Assembly: GCA_965113315.1 (NCBI GenBank)
Contig: OZ220363.1
Source: Podarcis vaucheri
Taxonomy: Eukaryota
Direction: 5' to 3' (one strand)
Length of the DNA stretch: 64,000 nucleotides
Shown here piece after piece: positions 8,082-49,100 of the stretch. The stretch's first letter is position 1. Each line of letters begins with the position of its first letter. The notes beneath the pieces were generated by a model, which saw only the letters and a list, made by a program, of their open reading frames with translations, was not told the DNA's origin and ran no database searches. Both the position numbers and the translations under genes were made by a program.

Positions 8082-8744
8082 ATAATAATAATAATAATAA
8101 TAATAATTTATTATTTGTACCCCGCCCATCTGGCTGGGTTTCCCCAGCCACTCTGGGCGGCTTCCACAGAAACCAAAAAACACTAAAATATCATACATTA
8201 AAAGCTTCCCTGAATAGGGCCGCCTTAAGATGTCTTCTGAATGTCAGGTAGTTGTCCATCACCTTGACATCCAATGGGAGGGCATTCCACAGGGCGGGCG
8301 CCACCACCGAAAAGGACCTCTGCCTGGTTCCCTGTAGCTTCGCTTCTCGTAATGAGGGAACCGCCAGAAGGCCCTCGGCGCTGGACCTCAGTGTCCGGGC
8401 AGAATGATGGGGGTGGAGACGCTCCTTCAGGTATACTGGGCCGAAGCCGTTTAGGGCTTTAAAGGTCAACACCAGCACTTTGAATTGTGCTCGGAAACGT
8501 ACTGGGAGCCAATGTAGGTCTTTCAAGACCGGTGTTATGTGGTCTCGGCGGCCGCCCCCAGTCACCAGTCTAGCTGCCGCATTCTGGATTAGCTGTAGTT
8601 TCCGAGTCACCTTCAAAGGTAGCCCCACGTAGAGCGCATTGCAGTAGTCCAAGCGGGAGATAACTAGAGCATGCACCACTCTGGCCAGACAGTCCGCAGG
8701 CAGGTAGGGTCTCAGCCTGCGTACCAGGTGGAGTTGGTAGACAG
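8082..8744 (-). mobile_element. 5'-truncated L2-clade LINE (3' end of ORF2, 3' UTR and (TTA)n tail)
   Basis: Minus-strand frame VYQLHLVRRLRPYL...VHALVISRLDYCNALYVGLP...LQLIQNAAARLV...HITPVLKDLHWLPVRFRAQFKVLVLTFKAL is typical of the L2 ORF2 C-terminus. Microsatellite tail at about 8082-8106. Confidence 0.93.
8191..8744 (-). pseudogene. L2 ORF2 C-terminal fragment (downstream of the RT core), uninterrupted to its stop
   Basis: ORF track 8191..8679 plus in-frame extension to about 8744. 5'-truncated, with no native start. Confidence 0.85.
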
Positions 8745-11813: not shown

Positions 11814-11956
11814 ATTAATAATAATGATAACAACAATTTTATTATTTGTACCCTGCCCATCTGACTGGGCTGCTCCAGCCACTCTGGGTGGCTTCCAATG
11901 GATATAAAAACTTAATTAAAAAAAATATCAAACATTAAAAACTTCCCTATACAGGG
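11814..11956 (-). mobile_element. L2 3'-end fragment, same family as 8082-8744
   Basis: TTATTATTTGTACCCTGCCCATCTGACTGGG...CCAGCCACTCTGGGTGGCTTCCA closely matches 8108-8166. TAA-rich tail. Confidence 0.85.
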
Positions 11957-12690: not shown

Positions 12691-13835
12691 AAATTGCCTC
12701 TAACCCACATGCTTTTTTAGCTAGAAAAAACCACAAAAGAGTATAGTAAACCCATACCTGTCAATGACAGTGTTTTCCCCAACCTTCATTTCAAACTATA
12801 TATAGTAACACCTTTGAGGTCTGCCTACATTATTTATTGGTTTGGGGCTTCTCAAGTGCATCGAGAACCCACACAGAACCAGAGTCTAGTCCCTTTCAAA
12901 GGGGATCACACACTGTCACAGGAGAAACCAGGGGGTCCTCTCTGTATGATCTGGGGATAATTTGTCACAGGGGACTCTGGACAGGGTATCCAGAGAAAGG
13001 TCGGAACAGAGCAACACTAGCTCCTGGCTAACGCTGTGTTTTTGTTAACAGTGCTCTGGAAAAACATGAAACGCTCCATTTCCAGACCAGGTCACTTCCT
13101 TCTTCCATGATCAAACAATGAACAGATCTTTCTGGCCTTACAAAGGAGCAGCTGAAGGTTCAGTAAGTTATTTGTTAATGAGGACTGGGGAATGACAGGA
13201 AGACAGAAAAGTCAGCCGATATCGAACTCTTTTACCCAGAACTTGATTTGTCTAACTCCCAGTACCATATTTCCTCTTCATCCTACCACTGCACTTATTT
13301 TGTGCACTGTTTTTAAACTGCATATAGCACCTGCTGGGGTGGGGCTGAGAAATATCAGATTGCAGCCACTGAGGATGGGGATTGTAAGCCTTCCCACCCA
13401 TCCTGCAATCCTGAGGACGATCCCTCCTCTGAGGCTGCTATTTGCATCAGGAGAAAAACCCCCACTGGTGCCAATGTGGGTTTTCCTCCCAGTTGCAGGT
13501 GCCTTCACAGGAATGGTTTTAATCAAGACCACAGTAAGGGCAAGAAAGAGTTAAAATGCTTTCTCTAGCCCCTACTGAAATTCCCCAATAATGTTCAGCC
13601 CCTGCCCCATTCAGCTGCTATATGCATTTAAAAAAAAAAAAAAAGCCATGGACATTAAATAGTTTGTGGATCCCAGCTCAGATCAGGTCCCTCAGGGGTT
13701 CTGTTTAGATGACAATTTACTGCATTTGGGGTGATTTTATTCCCCACCCAGGATTCTCCTATTCAGTTTTATCCTGTGTTCTCCTCTGAATCACACAGCT
13801 GCACACCTGACAGAAAACTTTCTCACATATATATA

Positions 13836-13984
13836 GTTCCAGTAACAAGAAGCCGAAAGCACCAGCCTGAAGATGACGAGTGAGACCTCGTCGAAACGTC
13901 GCACAGACACCCCGACTCTTACACGGGAAGACACCCGAAGACACCAAAACCTGCATTCCTGTACCCGTGAAAATCTACGAAAGC
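13836..13984 (+). mobile_element. Penelope-like element (PLE) terminal (pLTR) fragment inserted in an (AT)n tract
   Basis: Signature CCTGAAGATG...CGAAACGTCG followed by ...CCCGTGAAAATCTACGAAAG. CpG-rich, and flanked by (AT)n on both sides. Confidence 0.78.
13865..13902 (+). ncRNA. Minimal type-I hammerhead ribozyme motif (PLE-associated)
   Basis: CUGAAGA (13867-73), an extra U, stem II GACGAG/CUCGUC with a 6-nt loop, GAAA (13893-96), palindromic ACGU mini stem III, and GUC cleavage triplet ending at 13900. Stem I has only 2 bp. Confidence 0.65.

Positions 13985-14012
<28 letters not shown>
13985..14012. repeat. (AT)14 microsatellite
   Basis: Direct reading. Confidence 0.95.
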
Positions 14013-14015
<3 letters not shown>

Positions 14016-14170
14016 TGAGTCTGGAGTGTATTAATAGGAAGCGTTGATTAAAAAAGAATTAGCTCCATAATCCTACTAGTTATACTTCTAACAATATTAT
14101 TTTAAGACAATTAATTCATATTTTTAAATAATGAAATTACCAGCATAAGACGCTAAACTTCTTTAGTATA

Positions 14171-33444: not shown

Positions 33445-34907
33445 CTTCTTAAGGTGGACAGGGAAGGGTGTAACTGCAAGCCAGTTAGGTTAACATCTGT
33501 TCTGGGAAAACTTATGGAAAACATGATCAAGGATAGAATTGCCAAGTGTATAGAAGAAGAACAGGTCTTGCTGAAGAAGAACCAGCATGGTTTCTAAAGG
33601 GTGAGACCTGTCTAACTGACCATTTAGCATTCTTTGAGAGCGTTAATAACCATATGGGTAGGAGTCACCTAGTAGACACTGTCTACATAGACTTTCAAAT
33701 AGCCTTTGGTAAAGTCCCTCACCAAAGATTCCTTAGTAAGCATAGCAGTCATGGGATAAGAAGCCAGGTCCTCTTATGAATCAGTAACTCATTAAAGAAC
33801 AGGAAACTTGGAGTCAGAAGAAATGAGCAGTGCTCACAATGGAGGGTGTAGGAAGTGAGATCTTTCAAGCATCAATACTAGGACTTTTTTATCTTGGTCA
33901 TATGTGGCATGGCATTAGGGACGAGGAGTCTTTTGTTTGCTGATAATACTAAATTGTTCAGGGTGGGTAAGAACAAAAAGGGAAAGGTGTTCCCCAAACT
34001 GTATGGATAAGTGGCACCTGAAATAGCAGAGAAATCTCAATGTGAATGCGAACCCCAGTATGTGGCGATTGTGAAAAATGTGAATTTCATATTGGGGGTT
34101 ATTAAGAAAGGGTTTCAAAATAAAGCTGCCAGTATCATTATGTATTTATACAAATCTATGATGCTACTGTGCTTGGAATACTGTGTTCAATTCTGGTCAC
34201 TGCACCTCAGAATTTGCATTTTAGAGCAGAAAATGTTTCAGAAAAGGGTAATAAAAAAGGAACAACTCTGTTATGAAGAAAGGTTGCAACATTGGATTTT
34301 TAATGGCTTAAAAATAAATAAAGGATTATGTATGGTGGATAAAGAGATGTCTTTCTCCTTCTCTCATAATAGTAGAACCCAAAACCATCCCATGAAATTG
34401 AATGTTGAAATATTCAGGTCAGACAAAGGAAGTACTTCATCACTTAGTCATAATTAAACTATGGAATTCATTACCACATGGCAGAGGTGGGTTTAGGGGA
34501 GAGCGACCAGTTCAGTCGCACTGGGGACAGAGCCTTGGGTGCACAGCGACTACGTAGAGCGGAAGGCGATAGAGGGGAGAGTCAGGTTTTTGCGTCACAC
34601 AGGGTGCCATTGAAATTGGAGACCCCAAGGTCCACCACTGCACATGATGTAGCAATGGTGACAAACTTGGTTTTAAAATAGATTTAGATGGTTTTGAAAT
34701 TAATTTATGGCAGTTGAGGATATCGAAGACTACCACTACCAGCCATGATGGCTGTGTAGTTCCTTCAGCAGTGGAAGCAGTATGGCTCTAAATGCCAGTT
34801 CGAAGGGAGAGTGCTGAGGCACTCATGTCCTGCTCAAGGGATTCCCATGCGCATCTGTGAAAACAGGGTGCTGGATGAGGTGGGCCTTTGGCCTCCTCTT
34901 GTGTTCT
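33445..34907 (+). mobile_element. Degraded CR1 LINE (RT region to 3' UTR), with stops, frameshifts and internal deletions
   Basis: Peptides NCKPVRLTSVLGKLMENMIKDRI...NQHGF, VDTVYIDFQIAFGKVPH, LFADNTKL and LYKSMMLLCLEYCVQFWS match CR1 ORF2 motifs. CR1-type 3' UTR. Confidence 0.9.
34482..34640. mobile_element. hAT-like MITE (159 bp) inserted in CR1
   Basis: Ends CAGAGGTGGG / TCCACCACTG, flanked by CACATGG / CACATGA. Interrupts the CR1 'WNSLP.DVV' region. Confidence 0.7.
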
Positions 34908-44000: not shown

Positions 44001-45775
44001 TTTCTTCCCTTCATTCCACCAACTGAAACAGAGACAATTCTTTGTATGTTGAAACGTGCAATTATCATGTATCCAAAAAGGAGGGTGTAATTTTCACATC
44101 TGATTACAAGGGAAGAGTGTAAGAGAAGCTGCCTCGGTAAACATACACTTGTTTACAGAGCAATACCCTTGATATTAAAATCTTCAAAAAAAACACATAT
44201 ACCACTGTAGGGGGGGGGCCAAGATGGCCATGCGGCAAAGCAAAAACTAAGCATTTCTCTTGGCGTGGCTACAAATGGAGAAGTCAAGTCTTCTGAACTT
44301 GAACATGCCTACTTACTTCAGATGAATGCTAAGAAGATATGCAGCCCAATTTTATTTGCGGTTACTCAGAGTTTAAGTCCCACTGAATTAAATGGAACTA
44401 CTATGTAAGTGTACACAGGATCATAGCCTTGCAGCATGTTCTTGTTGCACAGTGAGCTAAGGAGTTTATGCTGGTTTTTTAACCTGCTAATAATTCTAAG
44501 TAAGTATGTGAAATGCTTTGGCTACTTAAACACCTATTTGCTCAGTTTAAACTGAAGAACCCAAGTCCTTTGTAAACCCACGTCCTTTTCTTTTAAAATG
44601 GTGTGTTTTTTCTGTCACTTTTTATTTTTTACTCTTCCCCACCCCCCCACCCCCGCCTCATTTCTTCATTTGGGGGGGGGCGATTTACCTTTGATAAGAT
44701 GAGCTTCTGAGTATAAGAAATTATTTTTGTTGTCATGTAGGAAGAGATGCTATCTTGGAAAACACAGTGCAGTTTACAGATTGCTTAGTAAGGAGATCAG
44801 AGATAGTGGGAAGAGATCGCACAACAGGTAAGGTTAGAAAACATGCCCCGAAGCTGAAAGTGATACAAGCAGCCTTTTAAAATGATATAATAAAAAACAA
44901 TTGCCGTGGTGCAATTGCAGGCATTTTAGAAAGCACTTTCTAAACTACCTTGTGAGGACCGATACTGGAAATTAAAGCACAGCAACCCCATTCTTAAGCA
45001 GGAACAAAAAGGAAAATATAGACAGGCCCGGATTTCTTAGGGAAGGAAAGGGACCTCATGCATTGCATAAACAAAATGATTATTTTATAAGGCTAAAGGC
45101 ATCCGGTGTGAAATTTTTTAAATATATGGAAGAATTGATTTTATCTGGGCATGAAGACTACTTTAAGCCAAGGAGAACTTGAAACACTGTTGTTATTGGG
45201 GCGGGGAATTAAGGGGGAAAGCAATGGTTCCTTTAGACTAGCTGCTCTCTTCAAATGTTCTCTTCATTGAAAACCTACCTTGTGGTCCACTTTTTCCATA
45301 AAACAACGTTCCTGGTTCAGAAATCCGCTTGCCAACAGCAGTTTGATTTGGATCAGCTTTTATTGGGCAACCCTGAGAAGAGTAGCCTGGTTATTTAAAA
45401 AGAGAAAAGTATTGTCTAATATCCACTTGTAATCACAATTACGGTCCAAGTATTTGTGGTGTCTTCAGAGGTCTATGTGAAGTCAGAGGCAGTCTGTACT
45501 TTCCAACCTGTTTGCTCTGCAGTTTGTTCTGCATGCTTCCATTAAACTGTAGCATAACTGCCGCCATAGCTAGTACCACTGTATCACTGAAGAGACAAAT
45601 CTATTGTAATAGTGACTTCATAGCCCACTTCAGCAGAGTTATGAAAGGGTCTAAGAAGATTGTATGGTGGGTATATGTGCCCATGTACCTCTCTATTTAG
45701 TGCAGGTGGTTTTATCCATGCAACTAGTTTTAGTATTCCTGAAAATGCCTTCCTTAAGACATCCATAATCTTATA

Positions 45776-46017
45776 CAGTGGTACCTCGGGTTACATGTGC
45801 TTCAGGTTACATGCGCTTCAGGTTACAGACTCTGCCAACCCAGAAATAGTGCTTCAGGTTAAGAACTTTGCTTCAGGATGAGAACAGAAATCGTGCTCTG
45901 GCAGTGCGGCGGCAGCAGGAGGCCCCATTAGCTAAAGTAATGCTTCAGGTTAAGAACAGTTTCAGGTTAAGTACGGACTTCCGGAACGAATTAAGTACTT
46001 AACCTGAGGTACCACTG
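45776..46017 (+). mobile_element. Tigger/pogo-like MITE, family A, full length (242 bp)
   Basis: TA|CAGTGGTACCTCGGGTTA ... TAACCTGAGGTACCACTG|TA. Repeated CTTCAGGTTA motifs. Confidence 0.92.
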
Positions 46018-47859
46018 TATTAGGGGAAGTCCGTTTTGTGATAGGAGGGCTTCAACAAGTTTCCAGGATTAAAGTTTTTTGGGCTTTTCCACATACGCAG
46101 AAAACCTGATTTTTATTTACATGAAAAGGACTCAAAAAGCTAAAAAATGTAACACCCCCTTCCCCCTTCTTTATATGTGAACTGGGCAGGCAGGTGAATG
46201 ACCAACATGTCTCCCTGTGTCATGTGCAGTTTGGTCCTTAGTTTATAGGAGAAAGGCAGACTCAAGCTCTTAACACAGCAGCCTGTTTCTCTAACTGTGT
46301 GGCACTATCATTAGTTAGGCATTGGCATCTTCACAGTTGAAACACTAGTAGCCAGACAGAACTAACTCATATAAATATGGGCTGACTGTCAAATAAAATG
46401 GGCCATAACCCTTAAATGAAATTCTGTACATTATTATGTATGTCAGTGGAAGAAGTCACTGCATAGAATATGGGGCATTGGTGTTAGGATTGTGTGGGTG
46501 TATTTGGTGTCTAGTGCAATTCTCTCCAAACCCCCCCCCCCCCCACATAGCCTCAACGTATTTAAAACAATGAATTAATATATCTTCAGCACCCCAATCA
46601 ATGCTGAGAATGCACTTTCATTTTTCACAGAGTTGTTAGAGTACATTTGCTTATATTTTGCACTATTTTAATTTAACCATATTGATCAAAATAAGCACTC
46701 AATACAACCTTAGGCACCTAAGCCTTATTAAAATTAGTCAACTTGAAGCAAGTGACCTGAGGAAGAAAATTGCTCAGGGATTTTATATGCAGAGAACCCA
46801 ACTTACATAAATACCTGTTAATGAAATAAATCTCTTAAGTGAATACGTTTTCTTTAGACTGAACTTGAACACACAGGAAATGCCCGTGAGGCCCTTTAGG
46901 TGACAAGCTCATGTGTGAATATGCAAGTTTTAAAAGTCCATTTTTATCACTAATCACAAGCCTGCTTTGTGTTTTCCCTCCTGTTATTAGAATTAAGAAA
47001 GACTGCACCTGTTACTGTTGTGAGATCCTCTGTTGCTAAAGTGTTGAAACTGCACATACAATTATATCCAGTTGCATATCATATAATTTGTCTATATAAT
47101 ATACTGGGGGAATAGTACAATGGTTCTTCTGGTAACTCGCCCGCTCATTTTGTCCCTGTGCAAATTAGTTAGGCCGCACTCCTAGCACTTGCATAAGAGA
47201 AACGGGGCGGGGGGGGCAGAGAGAGATAAATAAAATAAAATCTAAGGCTTCCCCCCCCCCCAGACTAGTTTATGCTCTAACAAATAATATGTTTTCCTGC
47301 TACAAAAGTTGCCACATTTCTTCAGCTGGGTTGAGAGGCATAATTAAAACACAAGCTCTCAGGGCTGTCTTTAACAGTGATTTGCAATACACCCCTTTTG
47401 ACACATTCTAGTTCAAAAATATTGTTTTCAGAAACATTGCTGTTTCTTGAAGGGGGGGTTGCTGAAGTGATGCTACACAGCATTTTAAACTGATTAATCC
47501 TGTCTTTCCTCAGAGGACTTGACCTGCGATAATGTTTTATTTTAGTCGAAATGGGACGAGGTGGAGGAGATACACGATGTAGCCAAGGATAGACGTCTTA
47601 CTGCAATACCTTTTAATGAACTGAGCCAAAAATGAACGGTATGATCTTTAGAGATTTCCTCCAACCTGTTTATCAGAGACTGCCTATAGAGATATCTGTG
47701 TACTTATTCTCTCACCCCACCGCCTTGCTCTGCCTCCTTCTCCAGCCTTGTAAAGGATATTAACTCGTTGCCTAAGCAAAATCCCAAATGTGAGTCAGGT
47801 CTTGTGGCAGTAGCACAACTGCTGTGGTATTGCTGGCCAGAATTCACCCCAGTAAAACG

Positions 47860-48923: not shown

Positions 48924-49100
48924 TGCATTAAAGACTCCCTAAGTATGCATTGACTTGATACCCCGTAATGGCTTCTAAGGAGCCGTTATGTAGTATCGTG
49001 TCAATGATCCATGCATTGAGGACTCCCTAAGTACGCATTGACACGATAGACCGTAACAGCTCTGAAGAAGCCGTTACGGTCTATCATGACAATGATCTGC
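48924..49100. repeat. Two tandem 88-bp units, each containing a 59-nt inverted repeat
   Basis: Units start at 48924 and 49012 (TGCATT..GACTCCCTAAGTA.GCATTGAC). Hairpins at 48948-49006 and 49036-49094. Confidence 0.88.

Follow-up and report, generated by a model that had tools for sequence, protein, structure and literature searches.

Positions 13836-13984 on the plus strand of the 64-kb stretch of Podarcis vaucheri DNA analysed here (the window) are occupied by a 149-bp insert that we annotate as the end of a Penelope-like element (PLE) of the Poseidon type, truncated at its 5′ side and made up of 37 nt of 3′ UTR followed by the initial 112 nt of the ORF. Mapped depth rises at 13836 and is down again by 13984, and reading of the sequence places parts of an (AT)n target tract on either side, a left remnant at 13827-13835 and the right part at 13985-14012, as had been claimed when the insertion was first noticed from the letters of the DNA. 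The 3′ UTR (or pLTR) end, 13836-13866, includes the 5′ strand of helix I (GC, 13865-13866) of a minimal hammerhead ribozyme motif that extends from 13867 to 13900. Further downstream lies an AC-rich stem-loop (13922-13969) closed by CACGGG (13922-13927) and CCCGUG (13964-13969); the pairing of these two stretches had been predicted and was found as a hairpin in the MFE fold (z = -2.47). The CpG observed/expected ratio is 1.11 in the insert (11 CpGs) versus 0.31 across the window. Repeat search and descriptor scan both detected a single copy of the insert in the 64-kb window, in which neither reverse transcriptase (RT) or GIY-YIG coding sequence nor any PLE coding sequence besides the 37 codons of the insert was found. 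Weak miRNA-like Rfam matches around the insert merely reflected the (AT)n tract.

The window also contains other repeats. Copies of a short interspersed repeat in direct and inverted orientation (1-115, 1396-1565 and 45774-46020; 79-94% alike), with internal GGTTAAGAAC-type motifs, probably represent a squamate SINE. Two ORF fragments, at 8107-8679 on the minus strand (...SRLDYCNALY...IQNAAARL...LHWLPV...) and at 34011-34457 on the plus strand (...LEYCVQFWS...), matched no Pfam family significantly and resemble the C-terminal region of LINE reverse transcriptases. A conserved 73-nt repeat (11838-11910) adjoins the first of these fragments, and two tandem units of 86-88 nt, each a long hairpin and 78% alike, are located at 48924-49097.

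A minimal hammerhead motif overlapping a start codon

The motif reads, in order along the plus strand, CTGAAGA-T-GACGAG/tgagac/CTCGTC-GAAA-CGTC (13867-13900). The core nucleotides C3-A9 (CUGAAGA, 13867-13873) were assigned from the sequence and the descriptor scan. They are followed by a bulged U (13874) and by helix II (13875-13892), whose strands GACGAG (13875-13880) and CUCGUC (13887-13892) enclose the 6-nt loop tgagac (13881-13886). The segment 13893-13900 comprises GAAA (13893-13896), the palindromic ACGU (13896-13899) that replaces helix III, and C17; its GAAACGTC also occurs in Poseidon_Ac (PAc), an element of Anolis carolinensis. Helix I is completed by its 3′ strand GC (13901-13902), which pairs with GC at 13865-13866, and the predicted cut lies between 13900 and 13901. 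Re-reading confirmed to the letter what the sequence-only reading had given for the coordinates of the motif, the 6-bp stem II, the extra U after A9 and the palindrome. A9, the bulged U and G10.1 together form the ATG start codon of the PLE ORF (13873-13875), as seen from the translation and as in PAc, and the first 37 codons (MTSETSSKRRTDTPTLTREDTRRHQNLHSCTRENLRK; 13873-13983) remain open to the end of the insert.

The conserved hammerhead core is present in full (CUGAAGA, GAAA, U13899 and C13900), and helix II, a perfect 6-bp stem closed by G10.1-C11.1, was found in every computed fold. The traits described for PLE minimal hammerheads are a nucleotide lying between 9 and 10.1, the pair G10.1-C11.1, a long helix II, a short helix I and a palindrome at 15.2-16.2 (PMC4209133). 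Helix I of the window motif has just 2 bp (GC/GC), which is under the 4-5 bp of most minimal hammerheads and within the range of a Drosophila virilis PLE variant, for which a 2-bp helix I has been described (PMC4209133). The 2-bp stem I and the solitary copy, to which the earlier reservations referred, are both factually right and typical of PLE families and their truncated copies, and most genomic instances of PLE minimal hammerheads are, like this one, solitary and located in truncated copies. In terms of fold stability, neither the element (z = -0.19) nor the motif (z = -0.51) was better than shuffled sequence. A canonical ACGU-ACGU dimer was computed at -20.3 kcal/mol against 2 x -8.6 kcal/mol for the monomers, a gain of about 3 kcal/mol, and unconstrained dimer cofolding favoured another pairing over the ACGU palindrome.

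Scanning both strands of the window with a relaxed descriptor (CTGANGA, a bulge of 0-1 nt, 4 bp or more in stem II, GAAA) recovered this site as the sole match. In 1000 first-order Markov replicates the chance expectation per window was 0.157 for a stem II of at least 4 bp and 0.035 for at least 6 bp, and when GAAACGUH was added to the descriptor there was no match in the 1000 replicates. The proposed check with Rfam hammerhead models, on the other hand, came out negative: the models reported no match, neither at the gathering score nor, for the 401 bases of 13700-14100, at E<=10. This silence is expected because the motif lacks a helix III of its own and has a helix I of only 2 bp; membership is therefore not claimable from a curated model, and published minimal hammerheads were likewise recovered only by a dedicated relaxed descriptor (PMC4209133). 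The Rfam family Hammerhead_1, with the ribozymes of Schistosoma and of newt satellite DNA, shares with the window motif the core, the type I topology and a weak, dimer-dependent helix III, whereas the window motif has a far shorter helix I, no contacts between loop I and loop II and no score at E<=10. Metagenome contigs, scanned for the exact pattern of the motif, gave no match.

Comparison with the green anole element Poseidon_Ac

The consensus sequence of PAc is printed in the supplement of PMC11167929; we took it from there and aligned it by eye with the window and with the protein P0002 described below. At the head-to-tail junction between two PAc units, where CTGAGG joins ATGCCTGCCATAGATGTGGGCGAAACGTC, CUGANGA is followed by an extra U, a 6-bp helix II (GCCUGC/GUGGGC) and GAAACGUC (PMC11167929). 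PAc and the window therefore have in common CUGANGA, the U bulged after A9, a 6-bp helix II, GAAACGUC and the start codon formed by A9, U and G10.1. Between the two elements, four helix II pairs out of six have changed, three of these with both bases replaced, and pairing is retained at all six. Loop II comprises 6 nt in the window and 7 nt in PAc, which puts GAAACGUC into a different reading frame and makes the first ten residues unlike (MTSETSSKRR in the window, MPAIDVGETS in PAc). Since GAAACGTC is divided into GGC GAA ACG TCA in PAc and into TCG AAA CGT CGC in the window, it is the RNA motif that the two have in common and not the peptide. The distance from the ATG to the cut is 25-26 nt in both elements (25 nt in the window), the one-base difference being that of the helix II loop.

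In a profile-free search of 1.84 billion proteins, the 37-residue peptide had one full-length match, P0002, an unnamed singleton of 189 aa from a Logan assembly that is encoded on a 2989-nt contig. The identity is 68% over residues 1-37 of both. It is unevenly distributed, with 10 of 10 identical residues in the hammerhead-coding part and 15 of 27 in the remainder (Fisher p = 0.015). The rest of P0002 (QISDLYGEETFQLTRTYEKL...CRDKNVIP...KTP) aligns by eye and without gaps with residues 33-94 of Poseidon_Ac_1p (QHIEHLYGEKLFQDTRRLEKL...CRDTDTIP...KTP), with 30 of 62 positions identical. Through P0002, the N-terminal protein region of the window family would thus be homologous to that of PAc. The proposed tie of the insert to an autonomous PLE rests on the 37-aa match together with the by-eye alignment of P0002 and PAc; searches with P0002 in Pfam, the ESM Atlas and PDB sequences gave no match. 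P0001, which ranked first in the 37-aa search, was rejected as a low-complexity match: its sequence is repetitive, DDE_3 fits it weakly, and it shows 15 short stretches. Four loci from the search for relatives of P0002 were likewise discarded, as their match was confined to the seeded peptide DLYGEETF within an unrelated protein.

The two elements also agree in how they end. PAc and the window family have in common that the 3′ end, or RT start, is located some 111-118 nt inside the ORF, that a tail is optional and that insertion is into AT-rich DNA. In PAc, reverse transcription starts at ORF nt 111-118, as mapped in vitro (PMC11167929); the 3′ end of the insert at ORF nt 112 aligns codon by codon with PAc nt 115 (TRENLRK versus GHESLRQ), and the AC-rich stem-loop at 13922-13969 is, by analogy, the likely counterpart of the PAc start region. 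The window element nevertheless belongs to a family other than PAc: the 3′ UTR 5′ of the motif could not be aligned by eye, the tail of the window family measures 29 nt, and the window copy is a mere 149-bp fragment.

Ends, tail and abundance of the family in public reads

Public contigs and reads from two related species (organisms A and B) were mapped onto 13650-14160. Summed contig depth amounted to 0.4-1.0 million on the insert versus 38.9 on the single-copy left flank, a ratio of about 10^4 that does not equal an exact copy number and by which the family is very abundant in both organisms; roughly, the genome holds ten thousand or more copies of this retrotransposon end. Where contigs and reads cross 13836 coming from the right, they pass into a common sequence (...CACTGAGATCC[A/T]GCTCT) unlike the flank at the locus. 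Other copies therefore extend further 5′ and the window copy is 5′-truncated. On the other side, many copies stop at 13955/13956 and pass into (AT)n, and the depth halves after 13956, which identifies 13956-13984 as an optional PLE tail of 29 nt between two alternative 3′ ends of the family and at the same time defines its (TA)n target preference. (AT)n also precedes other truncation points, at 13845 and 13847, and one head-to-tail joint in run X1, leading from 13955 through GCTCT to 13836, represents a partial tandem elsewhere. In genomic PLE copies, tails of 30-40 bp correspond to the stretch between two RT start sites (PMC11167929), and the PLE signature is made up of targets in (TA)n or otherwise AT-rich DNA, of copies truncated at the 5′ end, of tails and of partial tandems (PMC11167929 among other sources).

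The earlier supposition that the copy is probably young agrees with the CpG ratio and with the fact that 573 of the 708 X1 contigs on the insert are at least 99% alike. In the DNA runs of the two species, no position within 13836-13902 carried a variant at 5% or more, compared with five positions within 13903-13939, a contrast that is only suggestive given five differences in all. At positions 13903, 13904, 13914, 13918 and 13939, organism B has C, T, A, T and G where the window copy has A, C, G, C and A, and position 13903 also varies among the runs of organism A (C in 19% in X1, in 100% in X3). These differing consensus positions point to species-specific subfamilies and recent activity. The share of 13650-14160 words was 0.72-0.74 in organism B versus 0.82-0.94 in organism A, and the single X4 contig on the flank ends at 13835; the lower share in organism B fits an empty site and subfamily differences alike. 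In six metatranscriptome runs (X15-X20), which carry the labels bird, liver or nervous-system metagenome, 8-12% of the sampled words of the same region were observed, which could be (AT)n words or derive from a related PLE module.

Origin, transcription and possible cleavage

The insert very probably represents the terminal module of a Poseidon-type PLE in a 5′-truncated copy that was dead on arrival. The sequence-only reading had already seen a PLE-derived fragment with a minimal hammerhead, and the architecture shared with PAc, the homology at the ORF start and the mapping of the ends substantiate that view. By analogy with PAc, the GIY-YIG endonuclease of the element would have opened a target rich in AT, in this case a (TA)n microsatellite, and the RT would have begun within its template RNA, at the AC-rich stem-loop that lies about 112 nt from the start of the ORF (the site that yields copies with tail). 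The template would have been a tandem or partial-tandem transcript, which the RT may have copied back past the ORF start and the hammerhead before it halted 149 nt on. The hammerhead is then a passenger that owes its presence at the locus solely to its position in the final 120 nt of all family copies. In the parent element it overlaps the start codon, and cleavage after C17 would part the AUG from the ORF; lacking a helix III of its own, the motif therefore needs a second copy for ACGU pairing or the protein of the element, as shown for PAc. Because the predicted cut of the parent element falls between the AUG and the rest of the ORF, and also between the RT start and the element's body, an RNA molecule that is cleaved could neither be translated nor be copied in full length.

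Instead of a truncated full-length element, the insert might be the monomer of a short, non-autonomous derivative of a PLE end, similar to a non-LTR retrozyme or a SINE, that was moved in trans by PLE proteins and possibly spread via tandem units and small circular RNAs. Animal non-LTR retrozymes resemble the insert in their PLE-related hammerhead, their short high-copy units and their frequent monomeric offspring (PMC7229834, bioRxiv 10.64898/2026.07.22.740005); they are tandem repeats of type I hammerheads that yield small circular RNAs (PMC7229834), and reptile consensus lengths average 176 bp, with monomers as common offspring (bioRxiv 10.64898/2026.07.22.740005). The great abundance of the terminal module, with its depth ratio to the flank of around 10^4, and the single X1 head-to-tail joint are what such a derivative would produce. 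The window differs from these retrozymes, however, in holding one copy with a PLE ORF start and no tandem array, and in giving no signal of circular or unit-length RNA. The start codon and 37 open PLE codons are kept intact, 13836 is not a family boundary, as other copies go on 5′ of it, PLEs in the literature normally show 5′ truncation together with partial tandems, and small processed RNAs were not found in the reads. We consider this origin unlikely, and the truncated Poseidon-type copy remains the preferred explanation.

Transcription was followed in a bulk RNA run, in which neither unique flank of the insert was covered by RNA reads. The 156 RNA reads on the insert itself stem from other copies; 153 of them overlap it partly, and 71% run into unlike sequence. 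There was no excess of read starts or ends anywhere on the insert, including 13900/13901, in these standard libraries, which are a weak assay for cleavage, and depth in the sense direction is unbroken across the predicted cut (60.2 before, 56.4 after). Neither a small processed, unit-length or circular RNA signal nor head-to-tail joints were detected in the RNA run. For PAc, RNA-seq ends at the cut site were not found either (PMC11167929). The PAc hammerhead cleaves in vitro only with the element's own protein; mutants of C3 and G8 abolish cleavage and the double mutant is partly rescued, identifying a true ribozyme, and cleavage is dispensable for insertion in vitro (PMC11167929). Metazoan PLE minimal hammerheads in general cleave poorly in vitro, dimers included (PMC4209133). 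The lone copy in the window, which has neither a partner nor a full ORF nor detectable transcription, is most likely catalytically silent.

In RNA run X23 we noticed T>C changes at every T of the plus strand from 13868 to 13920 (13868, 13874, 13881, 13888, 13899, 13919 and 13920), and also at 13904 and 13918, where the consensus of organism B has T. They make up 20-50% of the reads whose first mate lies on the plus strand and are almost missing in reads of opposite direction; the DNA contigs have essentially none of them. With the caveat that the DNA and RNA runs come from different individuals, this has the appearance of A-to-I hyperediting, affecting antisense transcripts that are paired with sense ones. 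One 90-nt X1 contig, for which the kind of run is not recorded, carries four of the same changes. Separately, three X1 contigs match from 13901 onwards and are preceded by ...GATGTCTGT, forming the palindrome GTCTGT-GC-ACAGAC centred on 13901-13902. This junction would correspond to a fold-back of two inverted copies at the predicted cut, a weak indication that may be chance; a second fold-back junction was observed at 13865-13866.

These three palindromic-junction contigs and the strand-specific T>C changes in RNA are the only hints that the hammerhead of the module cuts in vivo and leaves 5′ ends or fold-backs at 13900/13901, and that sense and antisense transcripts pair into ADAR-edited double-stranded RNA. 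We regard this as improbable; if true, the junctions at the cut would arise when the RT runs off a 5′ end made by the ribozyme and then snaps back.

Even less credit is due to the idea that the motif at this very locus is a working self-cleaving ribozyme that processes a host or read-through transcript, alone or in trans. The catalytic core, G10.1-C11.1 and the perfect helix II are all in place, the ACGU could pair with any of thousands of copies (dimer -20.3 versus 2 x -8.6 kcal/mol), and the mutants and rescue make the PAc hammerhead a true ribozyme (PMC11167929). Yet the unique flanks are free of RNA reads, ends do not pile up and the depth runs from 60.2 to 56.4 across the cut; PAc is inert without its protein and shows no RNA-seq ends at its cut site (PMC11167929), metazoan PLE minimal hammerheads are poor cleavers even as dimers (PMC4209133), and helix I has 2 bp. 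A chance resemblance of unrelated sequence to the hammerhead core, for which one might quote the silence of Rfam and the order of a thousand loose-descriptor matches expected in a gigabase genome (extrapolated from 0.035 per window), is in practice refuted, since the insert is homologous to the start of a PLE ORF and the evidence from the family speaks against it, with the full motif absent from 1000 random windows, the architecture equal to that of PAc down to the position of the ATG, and a very abundant family without variants at 5% or more within 13836-13902 in two species.

The arrangement of a hammerhead around a start codon has already been published for the green anole element, and the window contains an ordinary copy of a known kind of element. 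Where it ends at the 3′ side, and the tail it carries, fit the internal RT start sites that in vitro mapping gave for PAc. Annotators who meet solitary hammerhead matches in squamate genomes should read them first as PLE ends. The hammerhead is meaningful as a feature of the PLE family: here a second family keeps the RNA motif while helix II covaries and the reading frame shifts, which argues for selection on the RNA and not on the peptide.
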